From positions 62,001 through 126,000 of the IMG/VR virus record IMGVR_UViG_3300009508_000011: 64,000 nucleotides of DNA. One strand, written 5' to 3'. The stretch's first letter is position 1. Every line of letters begins with the position of its first letter. A program made the position numbers and the translations under genes. Of this stretch, positions 17,576 through 23,473 are shown in pieces. The notes under the pieces are model-generated. The model did no database searches. It worked only from the letters and a program-made list of their open reading frames with translations, and was not told the origin of the DNA.

Positions 17576-17942
17576 AAATAAAGATATCTCCGTTTATTAA
17601 ATCTATACTTATTTCTCGATTGCAGAATTGCGTGTCTAACCTGTACGTTGATAATAGATATCGAGCATATGTAAAGGAAACGTGGGCTATTAGTTCATCT
17701 TCTTCAGAACTAGCACCCACATCCCAATAGTTGTAACGCTCCATGAAGCGATACCACCACTCTTTAGCTATAGACTCTTCAGTAGCTATAACACTCCAGC
17801 CAATCTCACGTAACATAAATAATGTACCGTGAATAAAGTCTTGTCTTGTTAACTCTTCAAAATCTTCTATTAAAAGGTTAGTACCGCGTAATGCAAACTC
17901 CACGCTATCTCCAGGGATAACACATGCAGTTACATCTACCAT
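17565..17942 (-). CDS. Hypothetical protein (about 125 aa)
   Basis: Start placed at ATG 17942 (AAGGT RBS) rather than the track's TTG at 18008. Confidence 0.55.
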   Translation of the reverse strand: MVDVTACVIPGDSVEFALRGTNLLIEDFEELTRQDFIHGTLFMLREIGWSVIATEESIAKEWWYRFMERYNYWDVGASSEEDELIAHVSFTYARYLLSTYRLDTQFCNREISIDLINGDIFIYGK

Positions 17943-17952
17943 GTTTTGTACC

Positions 17953-18435
17953 TTAATAGTTGTACGAGGTTCTTTGTCGTTCAGGAACGTAACCACCAGA
18001 TTCAGCAAACAGTTCGTCTTCTTTTCTCTGGCGTTCCATTTCTAAGACACGTCTATCGCCCCTATCTACAATCTTCAGATTATAAACAGCACCGCTAGGG
18101 TCACTATCTAAAAACTCAACATCGTATTCATGAAACTCACGCACTGGACCTATCCCTTGTCGAACCATTTCGAGTAACTCCTCTCTCATTACAGATTGAG
18201 CCTTCTCTAACACTTCGGTAGGGAAACCCATATCGCCCATTTGAATGGATAATTCCTCGGATTCATAGACAAGTCCACGGATACTATATGGATTAAGTAT
18301 ATACTTTAATTCTAACTCAATCCATGGACGCCAATTTACTATATCCAAATATAAATTGTTGTTCTTGGGTAAAGCCTTTTTAGTTTGGAGTATGGCGTGA
18401 CTTGCATCGAAAATAGCACCTACTGCTCTTGACAT
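17953..18435 (-). CDS. Conserved phiKZ-like hypothetical protein
   Basis: Packed ORF in the conserved block downstream of phuZ. Confidence 0.6.
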   Translation of the reverse strand: MSRAVGAIFDASHAILQTKKALPKNNNLYLDIVNWRPWIELELKYILNPYSIRGLVYESEELSIQMGDMGFPTEVLEKAQSVMREELLEMVRQGIGPVREFHEYDVEFLDSDPSGAVYNLKIVDRGDRRVLEMERQRKEDELFAESGGYVPERQRTSYNY

Positions 18436-18443
18436 ACGTTTAC

Positions 18444-18929
18444 CTACCTATTAAAAAAACCGTGTCCAATTACTGCACAGAACTCTGGTAACTCTTTATT
18501 ACTGCTTAGATAGTTATACAACATGTGGGCATAGTCACCTTGGTAAACTATAAAGAGTCCATCGTTGCGGAAGAATATATCCCATACACCAAATGGATTA
18601 CCTTTAATACATTTACCTAATAACAATTCAACATAATCAGTTACCCATGAGGTAGTACCTGGCCATTTACGGTCATGCATCTTTTCAATCATGTTTATTG
18701 CGTTAGTAGATACGTCATCCCCATAGTCAACCATTACAGTAATGGCATCTTGGAAACTAGCAACTATGAACTCTTCAAGTTTGTCTTCTGGAACGGGAAA
18801 ACCTTCTTCTTCCATAACACGTGCGGCTAACCGCTTGACTTCCAAACCATCTACAACAACATTCCCAGACTGTAGAAATTTATCTATGGCCTGTAAAGGT
18901 TTATAAGTTGGGTATCTAATGTTTAGCAT
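18444..18929 (-). CDS. Conserved phiKZ-like hypothetical protein
   Basis: Packed ORF in the conserved block downstream of phuZ. Confidence 0.6.
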   Translation of the reverse strand: MLNIRYPTYKPLQAIDKFLQSGNVVVDGLEVKRLAARVMEEEGFPVPEDKLEEFIVASFQDAITVMVDYGDDVSTNAINMIEKMHDRKWPGTTSWVTDYVELLLGKCIKGNPFGVWDIFFRNDGLFIVYQGDYAHMLYNYLSSNKELPEFCAVIGHGFFNR

Positions 18930-19291
18930 TCTATCTCCAGTAAAGACTCTCGTACTTTTATTTTAATGTTCATCACATTACATTCACCTAGTTGTGAACG
19001 CATATGACGTTCTCTTCTGTACAGTTCCTTATCGATACGTGAAATCAACTCCGTGGGTACAGAATGGATATATCGGTAAAGCGCGTAAGGGAGTCGAGAA
19101 TTATTGTTAATTTGTCTAGCGGCGAACATTAAGGAAAACTCTTCCAGTCTTGATAGGATTATAAGTTCAATAAAAGAATCACGCATATGTTGGTATTCCA
19201 TAAACTCTGAAATGACCTCATCTACATATTTCCCAACTTCTCTTATTTCCCATAAAGCATCTAGAATAACTAGTCGTCGACTTTCATTCAT
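18923..19291 (-). CDS. Conserved phiKZ-like hypothetical protein
   Basis: First gene of the block, GAGG RBS, middle-type promoter upstream. Confidence 0.6.
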   Translation of the reverse strand: MNESRRLVILDALWEIREVGKYVDEVISEFMEYQHMRDSFIELIILSRLEEFSLMFAARQINNNSRLPYALYRYIHSVPTELISRIDKELYRRERHMRSQLGECNVMNIKIKVRESLLEIEC

Positions 19292-19348
19292 ATTGCCTCT
19301 CTCGTTTATTTGAGGATATATACTCCTCCCCTCTATACTAAAAGGGGA

Positions 19349-19507
19349 CTATGTAATTTTTAATGGGCTGTAAGGCATTCTGTAGGGCGTAAACTTTCTC
19401 TTGAATGAAATGTACCCTGCGGCCCTATAAGACTTACGTACGGTCACTACAGGCGTTCTAAGACGGCGTTCTTTCTCCAACTTGAAATCGTAGATTTTAG
19501 CTGTCAT
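19349..19507 (-). CDS. Small basic protein (52 aa), absent from the ORF track
   Basis: Hand translation: MTAKIYDFKLEKERRLRTPVVTVRKSYRAAGYISFKRKFTPYRMPYSPLKIT. AAGGAGAG RBS and early-type promoter at 19540-19560. Confidence 0.6.
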   Translation of the reverse strand: MTAKIYDFKLEKERRLRTPVVTVRKSYRAAGYISFKRKFTPYRMPYSPLKIT

Positions 19508-19539
19508 AATACTCTCCTTTTAATTGGTTATCTCAATAG

Positions 19540-19560
19540 GATAATATAGTTCTGTAATAA
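19540..19560 (-). promoter_or_regulatory. Early-type promoter
   Basis: Minus strand reads TTATTACAGAACTATATTATC. Confidence 0.55.
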
Positions 19561-19599
19561 AATAGCGTAGACGGCATAAGTGACGGCACAGGCCGTCGT

Positions 19600-20095
19600 A
19601 CACACTGAGGTATAACAATCGAAAGTTCTTATGTATTATCGACTCAGGGAGTTTCGCCACTTATGTTTTCTCTTTGCCCTACTAAACTGAATGCCATTAT
19701 GTTATCCACATTAGGGGAATGACTTAGTCAGAGTTCGAAGCAGTGAATCCTTATGGACCACTATTATGTCCCAATTAAGGGATTGTTTTTGTTCGCCAGA
19801 TTGTATTGTTCAGGGTGAGCGATACCGGGTCAAAGGAAGGTGCGTCGATAGCTACCTTTCCTCATCCCCAGCACGGCCCTGCCCCGACGGGTACCACTTG
19901 CCTACTTATGGGATACGTCTACTCTCTTAGGAGGACACCCAGACCGTTAGCGCACGGTTCAAAAAATGGTGATTAGCGAAATTGAATAAACTCTAATCAC
20001 CTTTCAGCTTTTGTGTCCCGTCGAGGCCACCACAGCAACGTCAACGACTCTAAATCCGGAAACCGGAGGGTCGTCTACATACTATAGTGTAAAAG
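19600..20095. ncRNA. Candidate large structured non-coding RNA (unassigned family)
   Basis: ORF-free ~500 nt with local GC of about 60% (37/60 at 19861-19920) and many nested or long-range inverted repeats (see findings). Confidence 0.45.
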
Positions 20096-20100
20096 CTGCA

Positions 20101-21090
20101 TTAAAGGATAAGGTTTGTAGCCGTATCAACTTTATCATTGCCGCTTAACACTTTACCAGTATTTACATTGCGTGAATCAGTATTGCGCCCGTAGTTATCA
20201 ACTTCATCTTGACGAATCTTAACTAGCTCAGATATACCATCCACAGAAATGATATAATGAACTTCAGTTAGGTCATCTTCAAGACCTTCTTCACGGTAAC
20301 CGATACATGAGTATTCAGGATACAGTTCAGGAGCCGGAGCATCTTTATCAGTCATCAATGAGGCAACTGAAATTGGAGCTTCGATTTCTTTAGCGACAGC
20401 TACAGAATCACACACTTCAAGTAACGACAACTGAGCCGGTACATTAGTAGAGTGATTGTAGAAAGCCCAGTTTTGAACATCGCGTTGGTCAAGCTCATCG
20501 TTCTGTTGAGAACAAAGTGCAGACAATGCATGGATAGTAGCTTTACAGATTGCATCTACTTGACTACGACGTGTATCACGACCGTTGTGTTGGTAGCTTA
20601 TAATAGTAGGCTTGTCCAATTGGTCACCGATAGCCGCAAGCGACTTCAACGTGTTCAATGAGTTTGTAGCAGTGATAGATGATTCAGAAGAACCAACTAC
20701 AATAGCAACAGCTGGGATACCACGATTCAACAATTCTTTCATCAGTAGTGGACCAATAACAGAACCTGAACCACCAGATGCTGAGAATGCAACGATGTTG
20801 AATCCAGCAGGAGGTTGTTTAATAAGACACTGGCGTACTGTATCGTTAATCGCACTTGCGTTATCACGACGTACTTTACCAGAACCTTCACCTTCATCAA
20901 CCGCTAGGAAGAAAGGTAGATTTGCTTGCTTGTGTTTGTCGGTAAGGTTAGATACAGAAGTATCGATTAAGCCTACTTCAATCTCAGAAAAGCCACGAGC
21001 GTTTCCGTCACCAGCGAATGGAGTCACTAGGTTAATACCACAGCCACCACAGCCGTACAAACGAATTGTATTATTAGTTTCGTTTTGCAT
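20101..21090 (-). CDS. phuZ: PhuZ phage tubulin
   Basis: LYGCGGCGINL, GEGSGKVR, tubulin signature SASGGSGSVIGP, and a short C-terminal tail ending NLIL. Confidence 0.93.
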   Translation of the reverse strand: MQNETNNTIRLYGCGGCGINLVTPFAGDGNARGFSEIEVGLIDTSVSNLTDKHKQANLPFFLAVDEGEGSGKVRRDNASAINDTVRQCLIKQPPAGFNIVAFSASGGSGSVIGPLLMKELLNRGIPAVAIVVGSSESSITATNSLNTLKSLAAIGDQLDKPTIISYQHNGRDTRRSQVDAICKATIHALSALCSQQNDELDQRDVQNWAFYNHSTNVPAQLSLLEVCDSVAVAKEIEAPISVASLMTDKDAPAPELYPEYSCIGYREEGLEDDLTEVHYIISVDGISELVKIRQDEVDNYGRNTDSRNVNTGKVLSGNDKVDTATNLIL

Positions 21091-21110
21091 CAGTTTGTTT
21101 CCTTTAGTTA

Positions 21111-21803
21111 CTAATATTTAGAATAATCGATTTCTGTGTATTGACCGGGACCATGGATAGGATAACGGAATACTACACTTATACGAACTTGATGATTGGC
21201 TCTAGCTTCAGCATTTGAAATCTGTTGACGCCACCAGTCACGGGGTTTAACGCAAACGTGTGCGTTACGACCATCTGGTAAGGTAGTTAATGCAGGACCT
21301 AAATGAATAGATACATGCAATACCTTAGTAGAGAGTTTTAATAACTCATCTAGGAACCATGGGATGTCTTGAGGTGGGATATGTTCTAATACATCAGTAC
21401 ATACTACCATCTCAGCTGGGAAGTCAGGATAATTAGACAACTCCTTGATTCCAGGGTCATACATCTTAATAAACGGTCTGCCCAGATAATCATAAACAGA
21501 AGGCCATTCAGGACTTAGTTTAACGTCATCTACTTCCTTAACAGTTTTCTTGTCAAGGAACTTATGTTTAAAGAATGCATCTGGGTTACCGCAACCAAAA
21601 TTAATTAGTGAGCGGCAATCATTCTTTTCCATCAACTGCTTAATGGTTGGTGCTTCTTTAGCATATTCCCCATTAGCAAACATTTCTTCAGGTGCTAATT
21701 TTCTATCATTAGAAAGAGTAGCGCCCTCAGTTGAATAGAGCAAACGATATTGCTCACCAAGTGATAAGTAATCGTCACTCGGGTTCTGTCTTGTATACTT
21801 CAT
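21111..21803 (-). CDS. Class I SAM-dependent methyltransferase (glycan/small-molecule type)
   Basis: SLINFGCG (motif I), MYDPG, VVCTDVLEHIP, NAH....P..WW. Confidence 0.75.
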   Translation of the reverse strand: MKYTRQNPSDDYLSLGEQYRLLYSTEGATLSNDRKLAPEEMFANGEYAKEAPTIKQLMEKNDCRSLINFGCGNPDAFFKHKFLDKKTVKEVDDVKLSPEWPSVYDYLGRPFIKMYDPGIKELSNYPDFPAEMVVCTDVLEHIPPQDIPWFLDELLKLSTKVLHVSIHLGPALTTLPDGRNAHVCVKPRDWWRQQISNAEARANHQVRISVVFRYPIHGPGQYTEIDYSKY

Positions 21804-21833
21804 TTTTTAAAACCCTATGTGTCACGGTTAGAC

Positions 21834-21860
21834 ATAAATAACTGATGACGTGTAAATTTT
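21834..21860 (-). promoter_or_regulatory. Middle-type promoter upstream of the methyltransferase-phuZ operon
   Basis: AAAATTTACACGTCATCAGTTATTTAT. Confidence 0.5.
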
Positions 21861-21868
21861 ATCTCGTC

Positions 21869-21891
21869 AAAAGAAAGGGGAACTAGTCCCC
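21869..21891 (-). terminator. Intrinsic terminator
   Basis: GGGGA/TCCCC stem plus U-tract. Confidence 0.65.
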
Positions 21892-21897
21892 AGACTT

Positions 21898-22626
21898 TTA
21901 TAACGTACTATAGCTTCTGAACTGTAGGTCAGGAAACACCTTTTCTTCGCTTGTATCAGCAAGATATGTATTCAATACTCTACGGTCATTCATTAACTTA
22001 GCAATCTTAGCGTCTGTAGTCTTCTTAGGTAAGAGACGGTCTTCTTCATTAACAATGAAGCGTTCTTCCAAAAGAATGTCTAACAGGTACTCCTGAATGG
22101 CTTTAAGATAACGCTTGGCTTTACGTTCTTCATCTGATTGTAAAGGTTCAACTTGTAATTCCATCCAAGCCACTTTAGAAGACGGTGGAGGGTTAACAAG
22201 CATGAAGCAACGAGTACGGTCACGGTAGAATGCAAAGTCACCTATCTCAGCATCGTCTAAGTCCTGTAGGTCAGAGACATCATCAATAGGCCATTGGGAT
22301 ACAGATACTGGAATACCTCCAGGAGTCTTACCATCACCAACCCAGAAGCGTCTATCGTCAGCAGTAAATAAAGGCTCACCTAGGTCAGGTACAAAAGAAG
22401 GCCTTGCTTCGTTCAACCCCACTCTTATGCGAATTGGTATATGAACAGTAGACTTCTTAGCTACCTTATCGGCTGCCTTAAGTGGTCCGGGTATGCTCTT
22501 CTTCTGAGATACATCACCATTTTTGTCGCCCTGTTTGATAGCAGCTCTAGGACTCACATTACGGCGCGACCTTCTTTTAGATTTGTTGGATTTATTACCC
22601 GTAGGGTTTTTATCTTCACCAGTCAT
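21898..22626 (-). CDS. Protein with a basic N-terminus and a tail-fibre/Mtd N-terminal-like motif
   Basis: GEPLFTADDRRFWVGDGKTPGG motif, shared with 44170 and 44774. Confidence 0.6.
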   Translation of the reverse strand: MTGEDKNPTGNKSNKSKRRSRRNVSPRAAIKQGDKNGDVSQKKSIPGPLKAADKVAKKSTVHIPIRIRVGLNEARPSFVPDLGEPLFTADDRRFWVGDGKTPGGIPVSVSQWPIDDVSDLQDLDDAEIGDFAFYRDRTRCFMLVNPPPSSKVAWMELQVEPLQSDEERKAKRYLKAIQEYLLDILLEERFIVNEEDRLLPKKTTDAKIAKLMNDRRVLNTYLADTSEEKVFPDLQFRSYSTL

Positions 22627-22657
22627 TTTTCAACGTCCTTTAATTTTTGGAGTTAAC

Positions 22658-23473
22658 ATGGGTGCTATAGAAAAAGCAATCAGTGAGGTCCGTTTTGCAA
22701 TCCCATACGAGATACTTAACGAGACCTTTAAGTTAGAAACTAATTATACCTCAGGGCGTTCGTCCGGTGTAAGAACTTCACTTGAAGCACGCATCAGAGA
22801 AGAAATACTAGAGAATAAAGTTCTAGTAGATTGTAATCTGATGGGCGGTCATGAAGTAGTCGTCCCCTTATCAGGCCTTCAAGTACGGTACAACATTGAT
22901 AGAACCTTTGTAGTTACTATACCTAAGAGCAGAACTGAGGGACAGAGTATTACTTCTGTACTTAGTGTTGCCCAAGCACCAGATGGGTGGTTAGGAAGCG
23001 TTTACGCTGGACCACAAGCTGGTACTGCACACAACAATCAAATGGAAGCCCTTTTCAGTTCAGTTGTATCTGGAAGAGGACAAAGTTTAATTGATGCTCG
23101 TGTACGTTTAATCGGTGACAATATCGTATTTGTTAAATTAGTGGATGAAACCACCAGTGATTTATTCTTAAGATGTCGTGTTGGCTCTGACAGTAATATG
23201 TCTAGATTACCAGCAACCTCTTGGTTAGACTTCTCTGAACTTGTTATACTTGCCTGTAAAGCCCACATCTACAGAGAACTAAGTATCCGTATGGATGAGG
23301 GTCAATTATCAGGTGGTCTAAATCTTGGTAAGTTCAAAGAGATAATTGATGAGTATGCAGATTCTCGTCAACTGTACAATGAGTTCATCCATGAAAAATG
23401 GCCACGTATAGCTGCCATCACTGATGAGGAACGACATAGTAAAGTAATCCAAAGTCAATTCGGAAGATTTTAA
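22658..23473 (+). CDS. Conserved phiKZ-like (probable virion) protein
   Basis: Start moved to ATG 22658 (GGAG RBS). MGAIEKAISEV..IP.EIL and ACKAHIY motifs are recalled from phiKZ-like core genes. Confidence 0.65.
   Translation: MGAIEKAISEVRFAIPYEILNETFKLETNYTSGRSSGVRTSLEARIREEILENKVLVDCNLMGGHEVVVPLSGLQVRYNIDRTFVVTIPKSRTEGQSITSVLSVAQAPDGWLGSVYAGPQAGTAHNNQMEALFSSVVSGRGQSLIDARVRLIGDNIVFVKLVDETTSDLFLRCRVGSDSNMSRLPATSWLDFSELVILACKAHIYRELSIRMDEGQLSGGLNLGKFKEIIDEYADSRQLYNEFIHEKWPRIAAITDEERHSKVIQSQFGRF

Follow-up and report, generated by a model that had tools for sequence, protein, structure and literature searches.

Is the long stretch without genes that follows the tubulin gene phuZ in a marine jumbo phage merely an untranslated spacer, or does it encode an RNA in its own right, and if so, of what kind? 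The stretch lies in a window of 64,000 nucleotides, corresponding to bases 62001-126000 of the 206,117-bp IMG/VR virus record IMGVR_UViG_3300009508_000011, which carries direct terminal repeats. The original prediction placed a GC-rich, highly structured non-coding element of about 500 nt at 19600-20095, interpreted it as a large phage ncRNA of unknown class with ROOL and GOLLD as precedents, and raised a possible role in nucleus or spindle biology. Rfam searches, comparison with related phages, covariation analysis and public RNA libraries were used to investigate these proposals. The observation was confirmed, with limits refined to 19569-20078 on the minus strand, in the same sense as phuZ. 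The interpretation was only partly supported: the reading as a large structured ncRNA of unknown class was upheld and the comparison with ROOL and GOLLD as precedents, not as family membership, was fair, while the link to nucleus or spindle biology had no support beyond adjacency.

A GC-enriched, non-coding stretch downstream of phuZ

Genes around the element run on the minus strand. PhuZ relatives in cultured phages were at most 43% identical, which indicated that the sequence derives from an uncultured, marine, phiKZ-like jumbo phage of the nucleus-forming type. DNA sequencing runs holding the locus came from marine, seawater, sponge, sand and aquaculture metagenomes, and DNA runs contained 50-94% of the locus words. 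The host is probably a marine gammaproteobacterium. Between the phuZ stop codon and the next plausible ORF (52 aa, 19349-19507, minus strand), no ORF reached 60 aa. All six frames carried 6-12 stops, the same held in the homologues described below, and no conserved ORF was found in any frame. When ORFs of 60 aa or more were considered, 19292-20100 was the largest internal ORF-free stretch of the genome. The GC content was 0.617 at 19861-19920 and 0.475 over the element, as compared to 0.394 for the window. The minus strand folded at -181 kcal/mol, better than shuffled sequences (z -3.39, 0 of 100 shuffles as good), while the plus strand did not (z -1.39). Coordinates of the features are collected in Table 1.

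Table 1. Features of the locus downstream of phuZ, in window coordinates (all on the minus strand), with RNA positions where given.
Window position	RNA position	Feature	Support
20101-21090		phuZ (tubulin-like, 329 aa, intact), upstream neighbour	Pfam PF22334 (TubZ_C_2, 1e-12) and PF00091 (Tubulin, 4e-7)
20078-20086		Late-type promoter motif TATAGTATG; final G (20078) is the RNA 5' end	Ends of two metatranscriptome contigs; motif conserved right after the phuZ stop in nearly all related loci
19569-20078		ncRNA gene, about 500-510 nt predicted, at least 433 nt seen as an RNA contig	RNA contigs, homologues, absence of ORFs and Rfam hits (see text)
20040-20078	1-39	P1, 5' hairpin	RNAalifold on 8 sequences: 8 pairs, 3 with compensatory changes
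20029-20039	40-50	Invariant GUUGCUGUGGU; UUGCU (RNA 41-45) in a predicted long-range pairing with GGCAA (RNA 401-405, window 19674-19678)	One-sided, pair-preserving changes only
19874-20032		P2 domain: long-range 11-17-bp helix enclosing P2a (19968-20001, conserved loop GAGUUU..UUCAAUUUCGC), P2b (19943-19958) and a variable arm	Covariance-model alignment of 10 sequences; duplex energies
19823-19874		P3 hairpin domain	Present only in the window-like subgroup; replaced or absent in L027, L029 and L028
19796-19807	272-283	Conserved single-stranded AAUACAAUCUGG	Nearly invariant in 8 sequences
19733-19782	338-346 (GCUUCGAAC)	P4 (CCC UUAAUU GGG, 19769-19782) and P5 (19742-19762) hairpins, followed by conserved GCUUCGAAC	12 pairs, 5 with compensatory changes; covariance model R1 finds exactly one copy per family member and none elsewhere
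19685-19732		P6, variable region	Indels between variants
19666-19684	395-413	Conserved UAGUAGGGCAAAGAGAAAA, junction strand; pairs with UUGCU and CUGCU	Predicted
19569-19665		3' domain closed by CAUAAGUG/CACUUAUG, containing the terminator hairpin GACGGCCUGUGCCGUC (19582-19597) and the motif CUUAUGCCGUCU (19569-19580)	Present at the 3' end of the slot in all 12 related loci
19541-19563		AT-rich promoter-like motif AUUUUAUUACAGAACUAUAUUAU for the downstream genes; not part of the RNA	Second copy at G000:C1:6658-6699; similar sites at 120846 and 111340

Transcription signals

On the minus strand, 23 nt after the phuZ stop codon, lies the sequence CTATAGTATG|TAGACG. In phiKZ, the late promoter read by the non-virion RNA polymerase is TATG, with the G as +1 (PMC4666361). 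The 9-mer TATAGTATG occurred only twice in the 206-kb genome. The other copy lies about 60 nt upstream of a 707-aa ORF that matched phrog_3231, major head protein, at E 1.4e-159, and the two sites share a T-rich stretch just upstream (TTTTAAC and TTTTACAC). The TATG core at about 20080 and the TTATGCCG terminator, both part of the original prediction, were confirmed.

At its other end, the element closes with a terminator type of the phage itself, a GC-rich hairpin followed by CUUAUGCCGU. A hairpin followed by (C)UUAUGCCGU occurred at about 17 sites in the genome, most of them 26-55 nt after a same-strand stop codon. Since several were located at convergent gene ends, with no same-strand gene for kilobases, the motif is a terminator rather than a promoter. 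Many of these sites also carried GCAUAA(G) upstream, which pairs with (C)UUAUGC at the base of the stem. The locus reveals the terminator grammar of the phage (GCAUAAG-hairpin-CUUAUGCCGU). About 27 nt further on, the AT-rich motif (..UUAUUACAGAACUAUAUUAU..) belongs to the next transcription unit.

Recovery of the element from marine RNA libraries

To investigate whether the element is transcribed, public sequencing runs were searched for its 31-mers. A search with 18900-21100 identified six marine metatranscriptomes (runs numbered X) holding 7-13% of the sampled 31-mers, while a search with 19540-20100 alone identified the same runs, and others from several independent studies, holding 27-42%. 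Runs X16-X20 held 27-40% of the 31-mers of 19540-20100 but only 7-10% of those of 18900-21100. Word counts for these five runs were the same in both searches (about 23 against 24, 21 against 20, 19 against 19, and so on), indicating that essentially all matching words fall inside the element. Metatranscriptomes containing the RNA included runs X16, X17, X18 and X26.

Placement of reads on 17800-22300 yielded, for X16, a single 421-nt contig at word depth 72 on 19646-20078 and nothing elsewhere in these 4.5 kb. For X17, a contig covered 19821-20078. Neither X16 nor X17 held phuZ or the downstream ORFs in the region examined. Both contigs ended exactly at 20078, the G of TATG, and the X17 contig ran on for 7 non-matching letters, as expected at a true molecule end. 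This RNA evidence derives from assembled contigs, which carry no strand information, and from one such placement of reads. The deepest contig stopped about 75 nt before the predicted terminator, at RNA position 433, which could reflect processing, strain branching or coverage. In X15, two pieces inside the element and one piece in the downstream 122-aa gene showed similar, low depth, so that the excess over mRNA was not uniform across samples. A "metagenomic RNA-seq random PCR" library (X25), which is DNA-like and served as a control, covered the whole stretch evenly at a depth of about 4-5.

Homologues in related uncultured phages

PhuZ-guided searches yielded three IMG/VR loci, and a protein search and exact-protein look-ups added twelve further loci (related loci are numbered L). 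In every locus with a PhuZ at least 59% identical, phuZ was followed by 340-790 nt without a called gene. In all of these loci except L032, this stretch started at a TATG motif soon after the stop codon, and in all of them it ended at a hairpin plus TATGCCG, followed 27-31 nt later by ATATTAT. Seven loci (L001, L035, L026, L003, L029, L027 and L028) carried full-length homologues of 397-507 nt, and two short contigs (L042 and L043) carried the 5' 230 nt.

Loci L030/L034 (about 240 nt), L033, L032 and L031 held other sequences in the same slot. Neither nhmmer nor two covariance models of the RNA (R1 and R2) detected the family in L030-L034, in L014-L020, or in the phages RTH11, Eowyn and phiKZ, although L031 looked architecturally similar by eye. 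Two phages with 42% PhuZ identity (L015 and L016) have a small ORF after phuZ, followed by TATAGTATG, about 190 nt of non-coding sequence and a hairpin. Only 54 nt separate phuZ from the next gene in phiKZ, and about 190 nt in RTH11 and Eowyn. The 122-aa gene further downstream was conserved across the clade, while the small ORFs between it and the RNA were not.

A blastn search of the region against 50,697 phage records returned no match. DNA-pattern scans of viral contigs returned only the three relatives already found, a scan of JGI metagenomes returned two more records of known genomes and three chance hits (L021, L022 and L025), and a scan of prokaryote genomes returned only chance hits in coding regions (L037-L041). 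Apart from the shared terminator and promoter cassette, the element was not repeated elsewhere in the window or genome.

Predicted structure and covariation

Conserved sequence blocks comprised GUUGCUGUGGU, the P2a loop, AAUACAAUCUGG, the CCCUUAAUUGGG hairpin, GCUUCGAAC and UAGUAGGGCAAAGAGAAAA. For five well-aligned sequences, RNAalifold predicted 106 pairs, of which 29 showed changes on both sides, against 12.8±2.5 in 500 shuffles (none as high). In this alignment, 92.6% of cells were paired, against 33-46% when partners were slid. The same pairs read on the opposite strand gave 82.7%, and the antisense alignment folded 16 kcal/mol worse.

A covariance model of the P2 domain built on five sequences found and aligned all ten (E from 7.5e-43 to 8e-4). 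On that alignment, 29 of 36 pairs had changed on both sides (16.3±2.4 in shuffles, 0/500 as high), 91.7% of cells were paired (71.6% in shuffles, 31-46% when slid), and the covariation score was 0.578 against 0.243. Only about 6-8 effectively independent sequences support the covariation, and the ten-sequence alignment was fitted to the model, which favours the structure. In an alignment-free analysis, the 14 nt after GUUGCUGURG bound their own downstream region at -24.9 kcal/mol on average, against -16.7 kcal/mol for the regions of other family members; for P2a, these values were -10.7 and -4.1, respectively. In the natural RNA variant of X16, seven of eight substitutions fell in unpaired positions and the eighth turned a G:C into a G:U. 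For the candidate long-range helix between UUGCU and GGCAA, changes were seen in L001, L003, L029 and the X16 variant (G:C to G:U).

Of the helices in the original prediction, ACGAC..TCCGG/CCGGA..GTCGT (P1), the long-range CGACGGG/CCCGTCG (P2), GGTGATTAG/CTAATCACC (P2a), ACCGT/ACGGT (P2b) and AGGAAGGT/ACCTTTCCT (P3) were real and covaried. Two others were wrong or lay outside the transcript: CAGCTTTT/AAAAGCTG uses 20091-20098, upstream of the mapped 5' end, and the long AATCCTTA..GGAC/GTCC..TAAGGGATT hairpin was not conserved, as comparative data favoured the two small hairpins P4 and P5 instead. CTGAG/CTCAG was only partly conserved. Palindromic loops (UUAA in P4, UUCGAA), considered as dimerisation sites, were not consistently conserved. 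A search for antisense matches of the conserved single-stranded motifs elsewhere in the phage genome returned only one 11-mer, inside a coding region, consistent with chance.

Comparison with known RNAs

A covariance-model scan of the whole window against Rfam 15 (4227 models) gave no hits at gathering scores. A permissive search (E≤10) of 19200-20400 gave only noise, and nine related loci gave no hits at E≤1. As currently modelled, the element is therefore not ROOL, GOLLD (including its conserved 3' domain), HEARO, OLE, a group I or II intron, RNase P RNA, tmRNA, 6S, SRP, a small self-cleaving ribozyme or phi29 pRNA. Since phuZ is intact, the element does not interrupt a gene.

ROOL and GOLLD, the closest RNAs in kind, are phage-encoded, hundreds of nucleotides long and very abundant, with multi-domain folds supported by covariation, no known function and no obligate protein partner identified. 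GOLLD expression rises during phage lysis, ROOL can be as abundant as 16S rRNA, and both assemble without protein into cages (bioRxiv 10.1101/2024.12.08.627333). The present RNA is shorter (about 400-510 nt against about 600-800 nt or more), is borne by a nucleus-forming jumbo phage and sits behind a phiKZ-type late promoter motif. ROOL and GOLLD usually lie near tRNA islands, whereas ARAGORN found no tRNA or tmRNA gene in the 206-kb genome.

Literature searches found small UTR-derived RNAs in phiKZ and 201phi2-1, identified by Grad-seq and ONT-cappable-seq (PMC10914365, PMC11512511), and a general statement that phiKZ expresses non-coding RNAs, but no large structured RNA after phuZ or in marine jumbo phages. 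Those small RNAs, which are also delimited by phage promoters and terminators, are 70-250 nt long, are mostly 5'-UTR products of premature termination, and none lies after phuZ. A phiKZ Grad-seq ncRNA named "5'UTR_gp40" or "p40" initially appeared to be syntenic, but the phuZ-PHIKZ040 gap in phiKZ is the 54 nt mentioned above, and "p40" is probably a separate PHIKZ_p locus tag. Phi29 pRNA, a structured phage RNA that works as an RNA in virion production, offers a possible functional analogy in view of the capsid-type promoter, but it is 120-174 nt long and made from an early promoter, and no evidence of a role in packaging was found for the present RNA. The element shares with phiKZ-type late transcription units a TATG motif with the transcript starting at its G, but its product is a non-coding RNA rather than a structural-protein mRNA, and its terminator is a hairpin followed by CUUAUGCCGU instead of a U-run.

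Interpretation

The most probable reading (probability about 0.78) is that the element is a free-standing gene for a structured non-coding RNA of about 500 nt, belonging to a previously undescribed family found in one clade of uncultured marine, PhuZ-encoding, phiKZ-like jumbo phages. The analysis itself established a discrete transcript whose 5' end lies at the G of a motif that the phage otherwise uses only ahead of its major head protein gene, a standard phage terminator at the far end, recovery from marine RNA libraries in most of which little or nothing of the flanking genes was found, and a multi-domain, strand-specific fold maintained by compensatory changes. In contrast, late and high-level expression by the non-virion polymerase (timing being deduced from promoter sequence only), metabolic stability and action in trans are inferences. 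The best guess for its mode of action, by analogy with how ROOL and GOLLD are thought to act, is a scaffold that binds a phage or host protein, or copies of itself, through its invariant loop and junction sequences (GUUGCUGUGGU, UUCAAUUUCGC, AAUACAAUCUGG, GCUUCGAAC, UAGUAGGGCAAAAAGAAA), which look like contact sites for a partner or for tertiary or quaternary RNA contacts. No evidence was found that links the RNA to spindle or nucleus biology, an idea that is weakened by its absence from other PhuZ phages and by the variety of unrelated or shorter RNAs in the same slot.

A role as an anti-defence or host-takeover decoy, which concerns function only and is compatible with the anatomy described above, is possible but rather unlikely. 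In this view, the RNA would sequester a host protein, such as a defence sensor, nuclease, RNA chaperone or ribosomal component, by analogy with adenovirus VA RNAs or phage RNA anti-CRISPRs and pseudo-antitoxins. Its apparent abundance and stability, its invariant single-stranded motifs suited to binding a partner, the variable small ORFs immediately downstream and its patchy distribution, with different RNAs occupying the slot in sister subclades as is typical of accessory and counter-defence loci, are consistent with such a role. However, no similarity to any known decoy RNA, CRISPR repeat, antitoxin repeat or tRNA was found, and a late capsid-type promoter is an odd choice for a counter-defence factor, which is usually needed early.

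A virion-associated or assembly/packaging RNA, made together with the capsid protein and either helping assembly or packaging as phi29 pRNA does or carried in the particle, is doubtful. The promoter 9-mer shared only with the major head protein gene is in line with such a role, which would explain the RNA libraries that mostly lack flanking transcripts, but a stable intracellular RNA explains the data equally well. No match to the pRNA family or any other was found, no RNA requirement is known for terminase-driven packaging in phiKZ-like phages, and absence of this RNA from other subclades argues against an essential structural role.

Still less likely is a long structured 3' UTR of phuZ, or a 5' leader of the downstream genes, that survives as a processing product and acts in cis on stability, termination or insulation. 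The short distance to the phuZ stop codon on the same strand and the many UTR-derived small RNAs of phiKZ-like phages (PMC10914365) are in line with this reading. However, the two RNA contigs ending at the +1 G of the promoter motif, the absence of phuZ from X16 and X17 and the terminator separating the RNA from the downstream promoter-like motif and genes argue against it, and 500 nt with conserved multi-helix junctions is far more than known leaders or terminators need. A DNA-level element (replication origin, packaging site or protein-binding array) or a cluster of tiny protein-coding genes, suggested only by the large ORF-free stretch with raised GC, was largely refuted by strand-specific covariation with many G:U pairs that work only on the minus strand and by the RNA contigs; the lack of a conserved ORF, the absence of a GC-skew inflection at the locus and the distance to the genome ends also argue against it.

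A more far-reaching possibility, which is speculative and unlikely on present evidence, is that this is a late-expressed RNA machine or scaffold specific to nucleus-forming jumbo phages, which self-assembles, or assembles with phage proteins, into a defined particle. That particle would act in capsid assembly or packaging at the phage nucleus, or be carried in the virion to act at the start of the next infection. If so, it would be the first structural or functional RNA component of a Chimalliviridae replication cycle, visibly active in the ocean.

Large structured RNAs with complex, covariation-supported folds are rare, and each, as exemplified by ribozymes, the OLE ribonucleoprotein and the ROOL and GOLLD nanocages, has so far pointed to unexpected biology. 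No such RNA has been described for nucleus-forming jumbo phages, whose nuclear shell, tubulin spindle and two phage RNA polymerases are under intense study. The transcription signals of the present RNA tie it to the capsid-gene promoter class, its natural variation is already enough to define most helices, and public marine metatranscriptomes show it as the part of this phage region most consistently recovered from RNA libraries. These properties make it a concrete target for structural work, since the RNA alone can be transcribed and imaged, and the locus reveals a slot after phuZ that different subclades fill with different RNAs.

Terminator and promoter-like motifs

Across its 206-kb genome (G000, contig C1), the phage uses a sequence-specific terminator, in which a GC-rich hairpin is followed by (C)UUAUGCCGU rather than by a U-run. 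The stem of this hairpin is often extended by pairing of GCAUAA(G) with (C)UUAUGC. Most sites were located 26-55 nt after stop codons, including at convergent gene ends, and the motif was conserved in all related loci. An AT-rich, promoter-like motif (UUAUUACAGAAnUAUAUUAUnCUnnUGA) was found directly after some of these terminators and ahead of small genes, and may represent the early-promoter class of this phage.

Genes and non-coding stretches around phuZ

The gene upstream of phuZ matched phage methyltransferase families (phrog_24759, E 9e-16). When ORFs of 60 aa or more were considered, a second large ORF-poor stretch of the window (about 720 nt) was found where minus-strand and plus-strand genes diverge, in partial overlap with competing ORFs on the two strands. 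A search with ARAGORN detected no tRNA or tmRNA genes in this 206-kb jumbo-phage genome.

Between the RNA and the conserved 122-aa gene, each phage carries different small ORFs of 52-159 aa, few of which are related to one another; this is a variable, moron-like slot. A strongly conserved element, UUUUAGUAUAGGGGGAGGAGUAUAUAUCCUC..AGAGGCAAnAUG with a GGAGGA/UCCUC hairpin, was located upstream of the 122-aa gene. This element is identical in blocks across four phages and is probably a promoter and 5' UTR signal.

Locations of the terminator, promoter-like and neighboring features (window positions unless G000:C1 or a related locus, L, is indicated)
Feature	Location	Strand
Hairpin-(C)UUAUGCCGU terminator, example in window	19569-19597	
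Hairpin-(C)UUAUGCCGU terminator, further examples	G000:C1 6698, 13068, 29317, 35071, 38060, 43527, 53006, 95882, 98923, 120846, 129136, 161019, 169295, 173249	
AT-rich promoter-like motif	19541-19563	minus
AT-rich promoter-like motif, other sites	G000:C1 6658-6699, about 120800, about 111300	
Small ORF in variable slot (equivalents in related loci)	19349-19507	minus
Conserved element upstream of 122-aa gene	19295-19350	minus
Conserved 122-aa gene	18923-19291	
Gene upstream of phuZ (phrog_24759 match)	21111-21803	minus
ORF-poor stretch	21804-22522	
Competing ORF	21898-22626	minus
Competing ORF	22523-23473	plus
Other non-coding sequence in the slot after phuZ	L030:3994-4233	
Other non-coding sequence in the slot after phuZ	L034:3851-4088	
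Other non-coding sequence in the slot after phuZ	L033:3358-3763	
Other non-coding sequence in the slot after phuZ	L031:4026-4395	
Other non-coding sequence in the slot after phuZ	L032:2557-2874	
Other non-coding sequence in the slot after phuZ	L015:2970-3170	
Other non-coding sequence in the slot after phuZ	L016:4205-4400	

The slot after phuZ in sister subclades

In seven loci from sister subclades (L030, L034, L033, L031, L032, L015, and L016), the same slot, which extends from a TATG motif after phuZ up to the terminator, was occupied by other non-coding sequences of 190-400 nt. The family models did not detect these sequences. One of them, in L031, appears by eye to have a similar 5' hairpin and long-range helix with a UUCAAUUUU loop. 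The slot may be a hotspot for late-promoter-driven ncRNAs.
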